From the sequence record MW735835.1: a stretch of 64,000 bases of DNA, one strand, 5' to 3'. A program made the translations under genes and the position numbers. Of this stretch, positions 47,157 through 64,000 are shown piece by piece (position 1 is the stretch's first letter; each line of letters opens with the position of its first letter). The notes beneath the pieces are model-generated. The model saw only the letters and a list, made by a program, of their open reading frames with translations. It made no database searches and was not told the origin of the DNA.

Positions 47157-47513
47157 GTGAGCAAATCTGAGGAACCGATTGTCGTCATCAAATGGCTACA
47201 CTCGTCCTCGGGCCGCAGTAAACGCAGCGAGATCGTCAACCAAGGATGCTTCGTGCTCGAGCACGAAGCTACCGGGCGCTTCTATCTGGGCCAGAGCGAC
47301 AACGTCAGCAAAGACGTCGATAAACAACTTTCCCAACTGGCAAACGGCAAGCACCCGAACAAGATCCTGAACGTCCTCTACGAGAAGGACAACGAGATCC
47401 GGGTGTTCGAATATCCACAGAAGGCAAAGAAGAAACGCGTAACCCTCATGCGTGAGCTGATTGAGAAGGCCGGCTACCTTTGCCTAAATCCAAGAGATGT
47501 CCGCAATGTATAA
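47157..47513 (+). CDS. degenerate GIY-YIG-like protein
   Basis: GCFVLEH..TGRFYLGQS.NV...L..GKHPNK.L..LY; lacks the first Tyr and the Arg. Confidence 0.6.
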   Translation: MSKSEEPIVVIKWLHSSSGRSKRSEIVNQGCFVLEHEATGRFYLGQSDNVSKDVDKQLSQLANGKHPNKILNVLYEKDNEIRVFEYPQKAKKKRVTLMRELIEKAGYLCLNPRDVRNV

Positions 47514-48012
47514 AGACCTGAAGCTTCCCAAGCTGGTGCAGCAGATTCTCCTGGTCACCCGTGACCACATTCTTTCTTCGTCCGCCAAGTGCCACATGTT
47601 GGTGCTGGCGACTCCCAAGTTCCTCAAGGACAATCCGCACCTGAAGCCGAGCGCGTTCGAACACGCGATCTTCGGCCCGGTCGTGGTCCTGAACATCACC
47701 CCGCAAGCGATCGGCCCGATCACCTTGGGTGATGACTTCATCAGCTTCGAAGCCCGCTACAGTGGTGCCCTGCTGACCAACTTCGTGACCATGGGTGACA
47801 TCGTTGGCTTGTATTCGCCAGAAGAAGGCTCGGTCATGATCGACGTCGGTGTGGTCAACCTCATCGGTGATACCGGCATGGGTGACGGCAGTGTCGGCAT
47901 GATTGCTGCCCGTCCGCTGAACAGCTACGAGCCGGCAGAATCCGAAGCCCAGGTCCAAACCCAACCCGTTCAACCGCCGCGTGAGCGCCCTAGCCTGAAG
48001 GTAGTCAAATGA
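47497..48012 (+). CDS. sspB: SspB-like ClpXP adaptor with intact ClpX-binding tail
   Basis: VVLNITPQAIGPITLGDDFISFEARYSG...IVGLYSPEEG; C-terminus PPRERPSLKVVK. Confidence 0.85.
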   Translation: MSAMYKDLKLPKLVQQILLVTRDHILSSSAKCHMLVLATPKFLKDNPHLKPSAFEHAIFGPVVVLNITPQAIGPITLGDDFISFEARYSGALLTNFVTMGDIVGLYSPEEGSVMIDVGVVNLIGDTGMGDGSVGMIAARPLNSYEPAESEAQVQTQPVQPPRERPSLKVVK

Positions 48013-48431
48013 GTCAGATAGCTCTGTTCGATGACGGCCGTAAAGAACCTGTCGAGTACGCTTTCGGCGTCCCGGTGCAGGTCTTAATCCCGGACTCCCA
48101 TGGCCTGACCCAGGCTGAGGTCGATGACCTGATGCCGTCGGCTGCCCTGCCGATCTTCACCACCTATCCGAAGCGCAACCTGCGTCCGGGTCTGGCGGAT
48201 TTCTATGCCAAGCTCAAGCCGGCTAAGATCGGCTACCTGCGGGCCTCAGGCTTCGTAAAAGGAAATGAAGGCTGGGTATTACATGGGAGAATCGAGTATG
48301 GGGACAATGTGCGCAGTGAACTGCTCACCGATCCCCGCCTGGTGGTTCTCAGTGTCGACATCGAACGTGGCGATCCTTCTAAGGGGCGAAAGGCTATTGG
48401 CCTGGACCGGATGATGGTAAGCCCGAAGTAA
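48009..48431 (+). CDS. hypothetical protein
   Basis: 140 aa, ATGA overlap. Confidence 0.7.
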   Translation: MSQIALFDDGRKEPVEYAFGVPVQVLIPDSHGLTQAEVDDLMPSAALPIFTTYPKRNLRPGLADFYAKLKPAKIGYLRASGFVKGNEGWVLHGRIEYGDNVRSELLTDPRLVVLSVDIERGDPSKGRKAIGLDRMMVSPK

Positions 48432-56893: not shown

Positions 56894-58765
56894 GTGACTG
56901 AAGCAATCCAATACCACGAAGCCCTGGACGAACTGCGCGCAGCCTCCGAGGCTCTCCTGAAAGATGGCGCCGGTGTCATCTTCACCACCCAGTGCCGTAA
57001 GAAGCTGGGCGAACAATATCTGCGCGCGATGGCCAACGCGGCCAAAGAGCTGAACATGGACGTCAACGAGGTGGTCACTCACTTCCGTTGCTCCACCTGC
57101 TCCCGCTTCATGGCCCGTGTGGGTCACCTGGTGATCTCCAACCCGGAAAACCCCTTCGCCGTTCGTTCTGTGTTCTGGAACCCGGCAGTCGTCACCGACC
57201 CGCTGATGAAACTGGTCGTGGCCGAGATGAAGCGTTACGTCGAGAGCGCTCGTATCCAGAACGTCTACAACGTGGACGGCCCGTACAAGCAGTACACCGA
57301 GGTGACCAACCTGGGCGGTAAAGAGTTCCGCCACTACTTCATCCCGCAGGCCGTGCTGACCCACCGCGTCCCGGTGCTGAACAACCCGATCAGCATCGCC
57401 GACTTCTCCAAGAAGTTCGACCAGGTCGCAGCCCTGATCCGTTTCACCGGTGAAGTGTCGCTGGACACCGTGATGTACGTCGACGGCCTGTTCCAGGCGC
57501 GCATGATCGAACACGTCGGCGCGTCCGAGAAGACCATGGGTGATCTGAAGGCCCTGTTGGCCAGCCTGCAAGTGGCCAAGTCCACCTCGGACTACGGCCT
57601 GGCTCAGGGTGACTACAACAAGGAAACCATTCTGGTCAACACCATCTGGATGGCAGCCCTGCGCAACATGAACATGCTGTCGATCCGTGGTTCGATCCTC
57701 GGCAAGCTGCTGGCCTTCACCCACGATGCCCTGGCCAAGGGCGCTCGTGAAGCGCAACTGGACGGCATCAAGAAGTTCTGGGCCACCCAGACCGACGGCC
57801 TGCACTACCAGCGCACCACCCGTGAGGCTAGCGAGTCGCAGCTCTCCAAGACCGCTCGTTTCCTGGAAGAAGGCGGCTGGAACGAGTCGCTGAAGCAGGT
57901 CGAAGCGGCCGAACTGGACCTGCCGGTACTCTGGCAAGCCAAGGAAGCCTGGACGTTCGAAGAAGGCCACAAAGCCATCTCCAACGACTTCGCTGCCTTC
58001 GCGGCCAAGAAGGGCGTCGAGCTGAACGATCCGACTCAACCGAAACCCATCGACCTCGGCTACTTCATCAACGAAGTCCTGCCGTTTGTCGAATCCATGG
58101 GCTTCGTGGCTACCGGCCTGACCTTCATGCCGATCCTGGTGAACCGTATGGCCAACCTGGAAGCCAAGCCGATCTTCGTCTACGACACCCTCGAGAACCG
58201 CGCTCCGTTCATCCCGTGGCGTTACGACCGTAACTACTCGGTGCGTGAGCTGAACCCGCTGGCCAGCCTGACCAAGAACGGCGAGACCGTCCTGCCGGTG
58301 CTGTCGATCACCTCGGATTCCACCATTGGTTACAAGGGCCGTCGTCCTCAGGACAACGACATCTTCTTCCAGTTCGGTGGCATCTCGATGCCGCAAGCGC
58401 CGCGCCCGGCACTCTTCGCCGAGTCCATGGACAAGCAGTTCTACGAGCACCGTCGTGCGATCGAGGACTACTGCCGCAACACCATCGTACCGCGTTCGGA
58501 AACCCAGCAGTCGATCTCGATGGTCTTCGGCCCGCGTCATCCGCAGGACCACTCGAATGTGTTCGTGCTCCTGCACGTGCGTTTCGGTGAAGAAGGCAAG
58601 GCCCGTTTCGGTGCGACCAATGTGACCTACCGCTTCGATGCGCGCGGTTACACCGTCCAGCCGGACCTCAGCAAGTTCGAAGTGATTCGTGACCGGACCA
58701 AGGTCGCCGTCACCGAGCCGACTGAAGCGCCGAAAGTGCCCACGGCAGAAGTCCGCGCACTGTAA
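56894..58765 (+). CDS. large conserved hypothetical protein with CxxC
   Basis: 623 aa; HFRCSTCSRF; ALFAE...RRAIEDY; strong codon bias. Confidence 0.8.
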   Translation: MTEAIQYHEALDELRAASEALLKDGAGVIFTTQCRKKLGEQYLRAMANAAKELNMDVNEVVTHFRCSTCSRFMARVGHLVISNPENPFAVRSVFWNPAVVTDPLMKLVVAEMKRYVESARIQNVYNVDGPYKQYTEVTNLGGKEFRHYFIPQAVLTHRVPVLNNPISIADFSKKFDQVAALIRFTGEVSLDTVMYVDGLFQARMIEHVGASEKTMGDLKALLASLQVAKSTSDYGLAQGDYNKETILVNTIWMAALRNMNMLSIRGSILGKLLAFTHDALAKGAREAQLDGIKKFWATQTDGLHYQRTTREASESQLSKTARFLEEGGWNESLKQVEAAELDLPVLWQAKEAWTFEEGHKAISNDFAAFAAKKGVELNDPTQPKPIDLGYFINEVLPFVESMGFVATGLTFMPILVNRMANLEAKPIFVYDTLENRAPFIPWRYDRNYSVRELNPLASLTKNGETVLPVLSITSDSTIGYKGRRPQDNDIFFQFGGISMPQAPRPALFAESMDKQFYEHRRAIEDYCRNTIVPRSETQQSISMVFGPRHPQDHSNVFVLLHVRFGEEGKARFGATNVTYRFDARGYTVQPDLSKFEVIRDRTKVAVTEPTEAPKVPTAEVRAL

Positions 58766-58772
58766 GTCCCTT

Positions 58773-58796
58773 GGGGGTGGACCTTCCACCCCCTTT
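58773..58796 (+). terminator. hairpin terminator
   Basis: GGGGGTGG/CCACCCCC stem then TTT. Confidence 0.7.
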
Positions 58797-59994: not shown

Positions 59995-60027
59995 AGAGGT
60001 GAGGGGTCCGCCCTCACCTCTCTGCCG
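59995..60027 (+). terminator. hairpin with CTGCCG tail
   Basis: 11-bp stem AGAGGTGAGGG/CCCTCACCTCT. Confidence 0.65.
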
Positions 60028-60062
60028 TCTCGCACATTCACCTGATCTATCAAGGAATCATC

Positions 60063-60992
60063 ATGTCTGACAAGAAACCCGCTACTGTTTTCATTGTTCA
60101 TCGCAACGACGCAGTCCTCCCTGACGAGGTGCGTAAGAATTACAACATCTTTGAGATGTCTGAGAAGTGGAGCCTTTCTGCGCTGACGCCGGAGAACTTC
60201 GCGCTCATCAATCCCGAAGACAAGGTCGTTGGTGTCGGTTACACCAAAGACGCCGAAGATGCATTCGGGTTCATCGACCCCGATTACGAGAAACTGTCGA
60301 TGGACGCTGCCAAGCGTTTCTACGCTCGGCCCACTGTTGCCCATTTCTTGGGTCTGCTTCTGGGTTGGTCGATGGTCAACGAAGAGCTGGAGTCTTACGA
60401 CGACGGTGATGGTGCCTCCTGGACCCGTGTCGATGACGAATGCTGGTACGGCGATATCGACTCTGTGATCCTGAACCTCGTCATGCCGAAGGATGGCGGC
60501 GGTGCCTGTGGCTGCGGTAGCAACTACGCCGCTGTGTTGTCGCTGGACAAGTTCCTGCGCACCCAGATGAACCACCCGTTCATCTCCAAGGATGAAGATG
60601 ACATCCGCAAGGGTCATCTCGAAGACACCGTTTATCGTGAAGACCTGCTCGGCCACGCCTTCTGGTTCATTGCCTACGTCATGGACGCGGCGGGGATGAC
60701 CGAACACGGCTCCGGCATTCGTCATGGCTGGCTGCAACTCAAAGGCGTCCTGTTGGCGCTGTTGATCGGCGAATCTATCCGGATGAGCACCTCTCAGGAT
60801 GAGGAAGAGCCGGTCGACCAAGAAGTGCATGACGAATTCAACCCGACTAAAGAAAAGGCCATGGAAGCTGCCATCCATCTGGATAAAGACCTTCAGATGT
60901 TGATGGCTGGAACCTGGGTACCCGATCGCCATTCCTGCGAAGCAGCACTGGATAACGTCGGGGTCGTCCGTCGGTTCATCGAATCCAAGTAA
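60063..60992 (+). CDS. hypothetical protein
   Basis: 309 aa, AAGGA RBS. Confidence 0.75.
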   Translation: MSDKKPATVFIVHRNDAVLPDEVRKNYNIFEMSEKWSLSALTPENFALINPEDKVVGVGYTKDAEDAFGFIDPDYEKLSMDAAKRFYARPTVAHFLGLLLGWSMVNEELESYDDGDGASWTRVDDECWYGDIDSVILNLVMPKDGGGACGCGSNYAAVLSLDKFLRTQMNHPFISKDEDDIRKGHLEDTVYREDLLGHAFWFIAYVMDAAGMTEHGSGIRHGWLQLKGVLLALLIGESIRMSTSQDEEEPVDQEVHDEFNPTKEKAMEAAIHLDKDLQMLMAGTWVPDRHSCEAALDNVGVVRRFIESK

Positions 60993-61033
60993 CTCGCACA
61001 TCCACCTCCGAACATTCATCAAGGAATTTCACC

Positions 61034-62263
61034 ATGCCTGCACAAGTCAACATCAACAACTACGACAACCACCTCGTGATCACCGCCACCGACCAGAGCA
61101 ATCTGGTGGATCATGTCCCGGCGATGGTCTACAAGGCAGTGTTGCGTCCGTACGGCATCGTGCTGATCAAGGACCGTCCGACCTTCACCCTTCCGCAACT
61201 GCGCTTCGGTCGCCATAAGCGTTTCTTCACCCAGATCAGTAACAGCTATGACCGCGATGGCCGTGGCACTGGCGTGCTGTTGGCTGGTGAAAAGGGCACC
61301 GGTAAGTCGCTGATGGCGGAAGAACTGGGCGCCTGGATGATCAAGCAGGACCTGCCGGTGATCATGGTCAGCGAACCCATGTCGGCTGAAGACCTGTCGG
61401 TCGTCATTAAGGCTGTCGGGCCGTGCATGGTGCTCTTCGACGAGTTCGGTAAGGTGTATCACGATGTCCACGAGCGTGAACGCCTGCTGACCCTGTTCTC
61501 GGACACCTCGTTCGTCGGTGTGATGTTCGTCATCACGGGCAACGCTGCCAGTGAGTTCTCCGAGTTCCTGGTTCACCGCCCTCAGCGGTTCCTCTACTGC
61601 ATCAACTACCACAGTGGTGTGGACGAGGAGACCATGGAAGACATCCTTACCACCATGCAGGTCAAGCCGGAGATGCATGAGCTGTTCCGCGAGTACCGGG
61701 TCGATAGCCGTACCCTGAACATCGACTCGCTCATGTGCGTCGTGCGTCAGTCGGCGGACTGCAAGACCCCGGAGGAGCTTGTAGAGCGTTGCGAGATCCT
61801 CAACGTACCGGAACTTCCTAAGAAGCGCTGGTACATCAAGGATGTCGTTCAGCTCAGCACGGACACCGAGGAAGTCAAGCCGTTTGGCTGGGACTTCAAC
61901 GCGAACCGTGTAGGCTTCATCGGCCTGATCGAAGGACGTGTGATGGAAGCCCGCCATATTCGCGATCCAGAGGGCCGTCGTACGTCTGTCGAGTACCAAG
62001 TCTCTGCTGACAACAGCGACGTCAAGATCGTCGTAGAAGGCATGCGCACTTTCGAGGTAACCCTCACTTACGGTTACATGCGCCCATGCTTTGATGCTGT
62101 GAAGCATGGTGAGCCGCACCCTGAGGCGGTTCTTACCAGAGAAAACAACCTCATGGTCCCTTCACGGGCAGGTGGTTTTGGTACGTTCCATTCCGAGGCC
62201 ACCGTGGATAGCGGCTCGCCGCGTGAACCGTGGCGAGCCGTTCAACCGGCAGGCCGTCATTAA
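61034..62263 (+). CDS. AAA+ ATPase
   Basis: Walker A GEKGTGKS, Walker B MVLFDEF, sensor-1 ITGN, Arg-finger HRPQRF. Confidence 0.9.
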   Translation: MPAQVNINNYDNHLVITATDQSNLVDHVPAMVYKAVLRPYGIVLIKDRPTFTLPQLRFGRHKRFFTQISNSYDRDGRGTGVLLAGEKGTGKSLMAEELGAWMIKQDLPVIMVSEPMSAEDLSVVIKAVGPCMVLFDEFGKVYHDVHERERLLTLFSDTSFVGVMFVITGNAASEFSEFLVHRPQRFLYCINYHSGVDEETMEDILTTMQVKPEMHELFREYRVDSRTLNIDSLMCVVRQSADCKTPEELVERCEILNVPELPKKRWYIKDVVQLSTDTEEVKPFGWDFNANRVGFIGLIEGRVMEARHIRDPEGRRTSVEYQVSADNSDVKIVVEGMRTFEVTLTYGYMRPCFDAVKHGEPHPEAVLTRENNLMVPSRAGGFGTFHSEATVDSGSPREPWRAVQPAGRH

Positions 62264-62302
62264 TCCCTGTTCCACCCAACCCAAGGACTAAGGAGTCCAG
62301 CA

Positions 62303-62620
62303 ATGCAAGTGAAAAACCTGAGCAACATCGCTGAAGCCCTGAAAGCCGTCTCCAAAGAAGGCAAGGTCACGTTGGTCATCGACACCCTGAAGAAGCGCGA
62401 CAGCGCAGCTGTGGGCAAGGTCGGTGACGTGTACTTCCAGCTGTCCTTCGACTCGTTGGCTGACGGTATCAAAGCTGGTCGTTCCGTGGAACTGAACGTG
62501 GAAACCGGCGAGGCTGTACTGCTCGACGTTCCTGTCCAGCCAGTGACCAAGGCCGTAGAGCCTACTTCTCGTCCTGGCCGCTCCTGCTCCTCCCGCATCA
62601 GCAACAAGGACATGATGTAA
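62303..62620 (+). CDS. hypothetical protein
   Basis: 105 aa, AAGGAG RBS. Confidence 0.7.
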   Translation: MQVKNLSNIAEALKAVSKEGKVTLVIDTLKKRDSAAVGKVGDVYFQLSFDSLADGIKAGRSVELNVETGEAVLLDVPVQPVTKAVEPTSRPGRSCSSRISNKDMM

Positions 62621-62631
62621 CCACCCCGTTC

Positions 62632-62664
62632 AGAGAGGAGGGCTTCGGCCCTCTTTCTCTTTTG
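62632..62664 (+). terminator. hairpin terminator
   Basis: AGAGAGGAGGGC-TTCG-GCCCTCTTTCTCT then TTT. Confidence 0.7.
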
Positions 62665-62678
62665 TTTGCGAGGAAAGC

Positions 62679-63209
62679 ATGACCACGATCGTTTATCATC
62701 AAGGCGCCATCTACGCGGATCAGGTCCACGTACGTGCTGGCACACCCTGCACCAGCCATCTGGCTGTTAAAATCTTCACCTCTGCCGATAAGCAGTTCGC
62801 CTACGGCGTGAGCGGTCGAGCCATTGCCCCGAAGGAGCGCGAATCTCTCGAACAGATTCTTCGCAAGGGCCTAGAGAAGCTTCTTGTAGCGAACATGGGC
62901 GATTCTATCATGACTCCCATGATCTTCTCTGAAGAGGAAATAGAACGTCTCAGCGATTTCGGTGGTTGGGTCATCATGACCAAGACCAGGGCATTCATTT
63001 GGCTGTCGCGGATGATCCGCGAGGCCACAGGAGCAACCATGGGCGCCGGTACCGGTTGCTGGCTGGTGTGCGGAATGATTTACGGCGGCATGAAGCCGGA
63101 GAAAGCCATTCTTAACACAGGTGACTTGGATTGCTGCACTGGTGGCGGTGTGAACAAGATCAGTGCTAAATCCCTGAAACCCTTCGTCATCAAAGGAGAG
63201 TCCAAATGA
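62679..63209 (+). CDS. Ntn-hydrolase (HslV/proteasome beta-like) peptidase
   Basis: M-TTIVY..GAIYADQ, KIF, GAGTG, D..TGG. Confidence 0.65.
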   Translation: MTTIVYHQGAIYADQVHVRAGTPCTSHLAVKIFTSADKQFAYGVSGRAIAPKERESLEQILRKGLEKLLVANMGDSIMTPMIFSEEEIERLSDFGGWVIMTKTRAFIWLSRMIREATGATMGAGTGCWLVCGMIYGGMKPEKAILNTGDLDCCTGGGVNKISAKSLKPFVIKGESK

Positions 63210-63787
63210 CCCTCGCAGTCTGGCTCGACGACGAAGTCGGCCTTCAAGCCCAGGCCAACCCGATGGAAGGTGTGTACTTCCGCCTACCGGAAGACAACTT
63301 CGATCGTTGCTTCTCCAAGTATGGTTTCGTCTACTCCCTCAAGGAGTTCGAGATCAACTACCCGGCCGTGGTGGAAAATCGCCTCCCGCCAATCCCACGC
63401 CACATCAACAATGCGTCCAGTCAGCTGGTCTACATGCTGATCGATCATTATGGAGAAGTCTGGCAGATCGACTATTGGTCTGATCGCGAAGGCCGCGTCA
63501 ATGCTCCTCAAATGTCCATCTTCTCCATGCCGGCCGGAAAGGTGAAGACCCTGGTAGCGTGCACGGATGAAGGCGATTTGGAGTTGCTCACTGGTTTCGT
63601 CATGGCCAACCGAAACAAAGACGAAATCAACCAGTTCATCTTCGATAAGAAGCTCGGTCACGGCAAACGCCTTACGTGGCTGAGCAAAAAGGACATCGTC
63701 GAACGTCTCAATAAGGAGTTCCCGCTTGAGAAAGATCCCGGTGAAAGTAATCCCTTCGCCCAAGCCATCGCCACCCCCTCGCCCTAA
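63206..63787 (+). CDS. hypothetical protein, possible divergent Ntn partner
   Basis: ATGA overlap; begins M-TLAVW. Confidence 0.65.
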   Translation: MTLAVWLDDEVGLQAQANPMEGVYFRLPEDNFDRCFSKYGFVYSLKEFEINYPAVVENRLPPIPRHINNASSQLVYMLIDHYGEVWQIDYWSDREGRVNAPQMSIFSMPAGKVKTLVACTDEGDLELLTGFVMANRNKDEINQFIFDKKLGHGKRLTWLSKKDIVERLNKEFPLEKDPGESNPFAQAIATPSP

Positions 63788-63925
63788 CGCGGTGGTAACC
63801 TTCTCTCCAGAAGGCAAGATCGTGCTCGGACCTGGGCCTATTGGTGGCCCGGGTAAATAAATACGATCCGACCAAAGATCTATGTAGTAGCACTGTGACA
63901 TCATCCCAAGATCACAAGGAACCCA

Positions 63926-64000
63926 ATGCTGCTGAGCCCGGTCATTGGTCTCCTGTGCCGCCCTAACGTCCTATCCTTCGCCTGGAAGGCGCTGATCAAG
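63926..64000 (+). CDS. 5' fragment of a CDS running off the window
   Basis: ATG after AAGGA; open to the edge. Confidence 0.5.
   Translation, partial: MLLSPVIGLLCRPNVLSFAWKALIK

Follow-up and report, generated by a model that had tools for sequence, protein, structure and literature searches.

We analysed a stretch of 64,000 nucleotides (the window) from the genome of Pseudomonas phage pPa_SNUABM_DT01 (DT01; record MW735835.1, 265.5 kb; host P. aeruginosa), concentrating on four consecutive genes at its end. These encode an AAA ATPase, a small protein, a putative N-terminal-threonine (Ntn) peptidase and a partner whose start overlaps the peptidase stop (Table 1). Window positions 60000-64000 correspond, with 100% identity, to positions 246000-250000 of the record. 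The deposited annotation lists the ATPase as PA10_00288 'putative ATPase' and the peptidase as PA10_00290 'putative protease HslV (cd01913)', so the HslV identity of the latter is not new. The record lists the 105-aa and 193-aa genes as hypothetical, and the paper describing DT01 discusses none of the four. An original prediction, made from the letters of the window, had read the ATPase and the peptidase as an HslUV- or proteasome-like machine. We found a conserved unit of another composition than ATPase plus peptidase: it runs from a small gene of about 105 aa through a hairpin to the peptidase and its ATGA-coupled partner. This conserved gene context of a phage HslV-type peptidase is a new point, not reported before.

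Table 1. Genes and hairpin at the DT01 peptidase locus (positions in the window).
Feature	Position	Strand	Basis or remark
AAA ATPase, 409 aa, phrog_2376	61034..62263	+	PF00004; phrog_2376, E 3e-50
Small conserved protein, 105 aa	62303..62620	+	Homologues directly 5' of the peptidase in related loci
Intergenic stem-loop with UUCG loop, then T-run	62633..62660	+	18 nt 5' of the peptidase start codon
Predicted HslV/proteasome-beta-type Ntn peptidase, 176 aa	62679..63209	+	phrog_1040, family profile, AlphaFold2 (AF2), Foldseek, VIA, catalytic residues
Translationally coupled partner, 193 aa	63206..63787	+	ATGA overlap; orthologues directly 3' of the peptidase

The product of the peptidase gene (62679) matched phrog_1040, 'peptidase HslV family' (E 1e-14). 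On its own, the DT01 sequence found no match in Pfam or the PDB; PF00227 in particular missed it and recognized 1 of 105 family members (E 0.0037). An exhaustive profile search collected 119 cluster representatives of the family, nearly all starting with M-T or M-S, and a profile built from 105 members reached HslV chains in the PDB (E 1e-5), with the D, K and G of HslV aligned to D14, K31 and G46 of the family. The AF2 model, for which the 105-sequence alignment was used (an earlier run on 7 sequences, at a predicted local distance difference test score (pLDDT) of 57, was discarded), reached a pLDDT of 95.9 and a predicted template modelling score (pTM) of 0.91. It has the alpha-beta-beta-alpha Ntn sandwich, with helices H1 at 51-70 and H2 at 85-92. 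Foldseek returned 235 matches of this model in the PDB at E<=1e-3, and among the matches listed all were proteasome beta, HslV or BPH. In VIA-align the top 12 solved matches were all HslV (Z 14.6-13.3), with Thr1 of HslV aligned to model residue 2, and clusters of the AlphaFold database (AFDB) agree with an HslV/proteasome-type fold.

The residues tell the same story. The N-terminus reads M-T-T, and Met removal would expose T2 as the nucleophile; because Met is normally removed before Thr or Ser, a propeptide is unneeded. Together with T2, residues D14, K31, G46, G124-T125-G126 and D151..T154 match the Thr1/Asp17/Lys33/Gly47/Ser129/Asp166/Ser169 set. The arrangement proposed from the letters thus stands as a whole, but the counterpart of Asp166 is D151 and not D149, as the 'D..TGG' of the original prediction had implied. 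Among the 105 aligned family members, residue 2 is T or S in all (105/105), and D14, K31 and G124 are likewise invariant (105/105 each). G46 is found in 100/105, T or S at 125 in 91/105, D151 in 78/105 and T or S at 154 in 81/105, with the D-x-x-T/S spacing of the last two retained. Judged by profile, predicted fold and catalytic residues, the product of 62679 is a genuine HslV/proteasome-beta-type Thr1 peptidase, as had been proposed.

We then considered its neighbours in other phages. Contigs with peptidase relatives (loci L001-L024) were searched with hidden Markov models (HMM) and jackhmmer for all four proteins. The module recurs in at least 10 divergent phage lineages, with the partner in ten and the small protein directly upstream in most of these. 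The orthologous partner lies immediately 3' of the peptidase, usually overlapping its stop, in DT01, the L002 group, L007, L008-10, L012/13, L015, L019/20, L021, L022 and L023/24. In DT01 the partner ATG overlaps the peptidase TGA and is preceded by AAAGGAG; the coupling noted originally is therefore real, and the pairing is kept in distant phages. Homologues of the small protein stand directly 5' of the peptidase in L002/3, L007-10, L011, L012 and L022, and as weak matches in L019 and L023, while a gene of the same size and position precedes the peptidase in L015 and in the Salmonella and Klebsiella phages SPLA10 and KLPPOU148. The gap between the small gene and the peptidase is 50-65 nt long and carries a perfect hairpin of 9-16 bp in 8 of 13 related loci, each different in sequence, whereas the background frequency of hairpins of this kind across the loci is 0.32 per kb. 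The DT01 stem is a bulged one of 9 bp and that of L011 has 7 bp; the DT01 hairpin is predicted to be terminator-like or attenuator-like. Since the 105-aa gene and the hairpin recur beside the peptidase, both are part of the unit. The original prediction was right to place them between the ATPase and the peptidase, but they are conserved parts of a module and not a mere caveat.

When distant peptidase members were compared by tblastn with cultured phages, only SPLA10 and KLPPOU148 were matched. Both genomes are complete, and both carry the trio in the same order, with products of 97 aa, 175 aa and 200 aa in SPLA10 (L016:5619-7043) and 94 aa, 156 aa and 112 aa in KLPPOU148 (L017:4720-5816). Further scans for related loci gave one contig from metagenomes, already in the set, and none from genomes. 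PADLOC linked none of the four proteins (ATPase, small protein, peptidase and partner) to a defence system.

Several features of the surroundings deserve mention. The SPLA10 and KLPPOU148 trios adjoin tail genes (tail sheath, tape measure, endolysin), and that of KLPPOU148 sits between oppositely oriented tail sheath and tape measure genes, resembling an inserted cassette. A role of the peptidase in head maturation was considered and rejected, as a head maturation protease is annotated separately in KLPPOU148. In two unrelated loci the triad is preceded by NADAR-domain genes (L012:914-1742 and L019:1-322), in the first locus together with an acyl-carrier-like PP-binding gene. Metagenome runs from estuary, soil and wastewater contain DNA nearly identical to window positions 61034-63787 (up to 83% of sampled 31-mers), so DT01 or very close relatives are environmentally widespread. 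RNA-type read runs yielded isolated read-length contigs only and were uninformative on transcripts of the module.

The partner gave no match in Pfam, the PDB or PHROG, and its ESM-Atlas model was uninformative (pLDDT 0.34). Its orthologues share M1, F41, L45, G83, G130, W158, I164 and L168 as invariant residues, with no invariant polar or catalytic residue among them, and it is probably a structural or regulatory subunit. It does start with M-T in DT01, as originally pointed out, but orthologues have T, S, N, I or L at this position, and for this reason M-T is not a conserved nucleophile. A reading of the partner as a degenerate Ntn paralogue was likewise not supported, although distant paralogy may exist. 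The hhalign alignment to the peptidase family was collinear and full-length but weak (21 versus 15.8 for the reversed control), and a richer 12-sequence profile gave 19.6 versus 17.4.

The small gene has a strong AAGGAG ribosome-binding site of its own in the 39-nt gap that follows the ATPase gene. Its product consists of an N-terminal beta-rich domain of about 75 aa and a Pro/Ser/basic C-terminal tail, which is disordered and carries a recurring, weakly conserved S-P-x-x-x-C/S element. ESM-Atlas models the protein as a small beta-barrel (pLDDT 0.61). Among the structures nearest to this model are OB domains from ATPases of the Rpt4 and Mpa types, with template modelling (TM) scores of 0.47-0.54, and HypC and DUF3006 are also among the nearest (TM about 0.5). 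The OB-like nature of the protein is of low confidence and is taken as a lead only. A borderline match of the small-protein profile (residues 2-52, window positions 62303-62455) to residues 225-275 of the GroEL apical domain (E 0.008, 51 residues) was set aside, as it is probably local compositional similarity.

Another interpretation is that the Ntn protein does not serve degradation but is a specific processing or ligating enzyme, connectase-like or a maturation peptidase, whose substrate is the abundant small protein or its tail. The small gene, always directly upstream and delimited by the hairpin, a layout suggesting higher expression, would suit a substrate of this kind, as would a disordered Ser/Pro/basic tail with a recurring element, and a ligase, connectase, is known among proteasome homologues (PMC8665760). 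Conservation of the tail motif is weak, however, and the catalytic set is of the full proteasome type rather than reduced, and we regard a dedicated processing enzyme as very improbable.

Among characterized systems, the closest likeness is to HslV (ClpQ), the peptidase of bacterial HslUV (MEROPS T1B). HslV has the same fold and a similar size of about 175 aa, also lacks a propeptide and carries its nucleophile right after Met, and equivalents of its Asp17, Lys33, Gly47, Ser129, Asp166 and Ser169 are all found in the DT01 peptidase. In contrast, the two proteins are 13-16% identical, the DT01 peptidase escapes PF00227, and its Thr-to-Asp spacing is about 4 residues shorter. The systems differ as well: the phage has no hslU-type gene, and has a small upstream gene and a coupled partner of 170-200 aa that are absent with HslV. 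The host P. aeruginosa has HslUV. The phage peptidase might be imagined to hijack host HslU or another host AAA+ protein, replacing or poisoning host HslV and redirecting host proteolysis. Consistent with this, the nearest solved structures are HslV, and genome papers on jumbo phages mention HslV-like genes, in one case with no HslU gene in the phage (PMC7823757). For nucleus-forming phages, too, HslV-like genes have been listed, as an accessory family. At so low an identity to HslV, however, conservation of the pockets for the HslU tail is doubtful, and HslUV has nothing that corresponds to the obligate partner or the small protein, which leaves such hijacking of host HslU or another host AAA+ protein quite improbable in our judgement.

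The ATPase needs closer attention. Its PF00004 score is 24.8 bits against a cut-off of 21.2. The Walker A (G85-x2-G88-x-G90-K91-S92), Walker B (D136-E137), sensor-1 (N170) and arginine-finger (R182-P183-x-R185-F186) motifs are intact as originally read, the set being invariant or nearly so in 25 relatives, with G85/G88/G90/K91, D136/E137, N170 and R182/P183/R185 strictly invariant. The protein comprises a conserved N-domain (about residues 1-60), an AAA core (about 80-260) and a poorly conserved C-terminal third, and its RPxRF resembles the second region of homology (SRH) of classic AAA proteins. No HslU, ClpX or PAN family match was found in Pfam, NCBIfam or the PDB, and there is no I-domain; weak secondary matches are to DnaC, Hda and clamp-loader-like models. 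Unfoldases that work with proteases are marked by an aromatic-hydrophobic-Gly pore loop; none lies between Walker A and B in DT01 (region 93-131) or in the family consensus. The K91-D136 spacing is short, at 45 residues, and the pore-loop equivalent spans about 5 residues (S113-S117). On these sequence features, the ATPase does not look like a protein-threading motor.

Its N-domain and AAA core are common to other phage AAA ATPases of phrog_2376, such as phAPEC8 gp014, Lactococcus phage 949 ORF82 and nACB1_058, from which the ATPases of the DT01 clade differ by the added variable C-terminal third. In phAPEC8, 949 and Bacillus phage WH1, these ATPases lie among small early genes, with no Ntn peptidase within 4-5 kb. 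Many ATPases of the DT01 clade carry a tail motif, approximately A/S-M-L-S-S/G-K-H, about 8-20 residues before a C-terminus that is otherwise unconserved (L002:11791-13176, L007:8329-9600, L008:8269-9582 and L009:8283-9584; proteins P0018-P0036). The motif could be a docking or degron peptide; it is absent from the ATPase of DT01 itself and from distant family members.

The distribution of the ATPase is also distinct from that of the peptidase. Its family was found by tblastn in 381 phage records, far more widely than the peptidase family. Proximity to the module, to within 4 kb, is limited to the DT01-like jumbo clade: the ATPase gene directly precedes the module in DT01 and L007-L010, precedes it by 3.4 kb in L022 and follows it at 1.2 kb in L002/L003, in which group the ATPase is 33% identical to that of DT01. 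All these ATPase-linked lineages are related jumbo phages that share large-scale synteny. Elsewhere, no match to the ATPase family was found within 6-8 kb of the peptidase in L015, L019, L023 or SPLA10. Within the same distance, no other AAA-like P-loop open reading frame (ORF) of at least 150 aa was found in L015, L023 or SPLA10, and the sole one in L019 is a KTI12-like kinase. A search of the whole KLPPOU148 genome, in which the peptidase is present, found no member of the ATPase family; a search of the whole genome of the N4-like phage nACB1, in which the ATPase is present and adjoins DNA helicase and polymerase, found no Ntn peptidase. Conservation of the ATPase-peptidase neighbourhood across jumbo phages, proposed beforehand as a check, thus holds in one jumbo-phage clade but not outside it.

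Taken together, the ATPase shows neither HslU-type features nor a conserved C-terminal tail, and neither co-occurs with nor adjoins the peptidase consistently. An HslUV-like ATPase-peptidase machine is not supported in the form originally predicted: the HslU match, the I-domain and the pore loop are missing, and each gene is found in a complete genome without the other. The link to the two proposed SspB proteins is weak. The product of 47506-48012, annotated as 'ClpXP specificity-enhancing factor', falls below the Pfam cut-off (PF04386, 21 bits versus 27, E 3.7e-4), and the overlapping ORF 48009-48431 (140 aa), presumably the second claimed SspB, has no Pfam match. Both ORFs lie 13 kb upstream of the module, and the unfoldase that SspB serves as adaptor is ClpX rather than HslU. 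On sequence grounds, the ATPase is a clade-specific neighbour of the peptidase module, and probably neither an obligatory nor an HslU-like component of it.

Some observations weigh against this assessment. In the DT01-like clade the ATPase has been kept within 0-3.4 kb of the triad through three gene arrangements, even though peptidase identity across the ATPase-linked lineages is just 30-49%, and this retained proximity hints at selected linkage. The SRH-like RPxRF is typical of classic-clade AAA proteins, the clade that contains the proteasomal ATPases. In L021, a different, BCS1-like AAA lies 0.9 kb downstream of the peptidase-partner pair, where a BCS1_N ORF (234 aa) is followed by an overlapping AAA ORF (235 aa), apparently split or frameshifted (L021:1692-3087).

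Such points would fit another reading for DT01-like jumbo phages, in which the Ntn peptidase relies on the AAA ATPase as its dedicated unfoldase or activator and the two form an HslUV- or PAN-20S-like ATP-dependent protease, possibly with an OB-like small protein as entry ring. The intact catalytic motifs of the ATPase, its proximity to the module in five lineages and three gene orders, and the classic-clade signature all argue in this direction. So do the resemblance of the small-protein model to OB domains of Rpt4/Mpa-type ATPases and the M-L-S-S-K-H-like tail of many clade ATPases as a possible docking peptide, although the OB match is of low confidence and DT01's own ATPase lacks the tail motif. 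On the other hand, an unfoldase is hard to reconcile with the missing pore loop and short Walker A-B spacing, with the lack of HslU, ClpX or PAN family matches, and with a hairpin that splits an ATPase-small gene unit from a peptidase-partner unit. Several lineages keep the module with no AAA nearby, complete KLPPOU148 does so with no member of the ATPase family in its genome, and the ATPase family ranges far beyond the peptidase. Comparison with PAN/Mpa/Rpt-20S systems is similarly divided. The likeness lies in the closeness of a beta-type Thr peptidase to an AAA that is of PF00004 type and has SRH arginines, and in a small protein that is possibly OB-like, whereas the DT01 system is without alpha subunits, a coiled-coil-OB-AAA fusion, a pore-loop aromatic and an HbYX C-terminus, and the DT01-type ATPase is not consistently linked to the peptidase. 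We therefore view a dedicated ATPase unfoldase as a tentative alternative, on the unlikely side; cooperation of the ATPase with the module in DT01-like jumbo phages may nonetheless occur.

On balance, and with moderate confidence, we favour the interpretation that 62679 encodes an active HslV-type threonine peptidase at the core of a conserved three-gene phage module, for which the nearby ATPase is neither obligatory nor HslU-like. Peptidase and coupled partner would be produced at nearly equal levels and assemble into one complex. The hairpin would lower read-through, so that the small upstream protein would be made in excess, as would suit a substrate, a cofactor, a cap or an assembly factor. 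Such a complex would need no dedicated unfoldase and might cleave peptides or unstructured proteins, or borrow a host factor; unfoldase-independent or host-factor-borrowing action has been proposed for other orphan proteasome homologues. A more elaborate and, in our view, unlikely extension is that the triad makes up a phage-specific, proteasome-like complex of a kind not described so far, whose cap or regulator subunits are not ATPases. DT01-like jumbo phages would then have recruited a classic-clade AAA to it, and the OB-like small protein would form an entry ring in trans; this would amount to a split, minimal, virus-encoded ATP-dependent protease of the PAN-20S kind.

Further upstream in the window, a strong terminator-like hairpin (58773-58793; 9 bp, 7 of them G-C) followed by a T-run lies just 3' of a 623-aa ORF (56894-58765) and may mark a transcript end upstream of a Nudix-like gene.

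What is known of phage-borne proteasome homologues comes solely from sequence surveys. In the main survey, Fuchs et al. 2021 (PMC8665760) described the phage-borne group-I homologues PPH, AAH and CPH, for which they found no informative genomic context and no co-occurring AAA+ partner. These are likewise compact HslV/BPH-like proteasome homologues of Caudoviricetes. The DT01 peptidase is not a PPH, a type of about 140 aa without helix H2 (PMC8665760), as it has 176 aa and includes H2. Where that survey reported no informative context, peptidases of the DT01 type stand in a conserved three-gene context, and this context provides concrete candidate interactors, namely the small upstream protein and the coupled partner. 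If the module indeed degrades or processes host or phage proteins, it would represent a virus-owned branch of the proteasome family and could bear on host takeover, on counter-defence and on how HslV and proteasomes recruited their ATPases. Should the DT01-clade ATPase cooperate with it, an orphan proteasome homologue would for the first time have been given an AAA partner.

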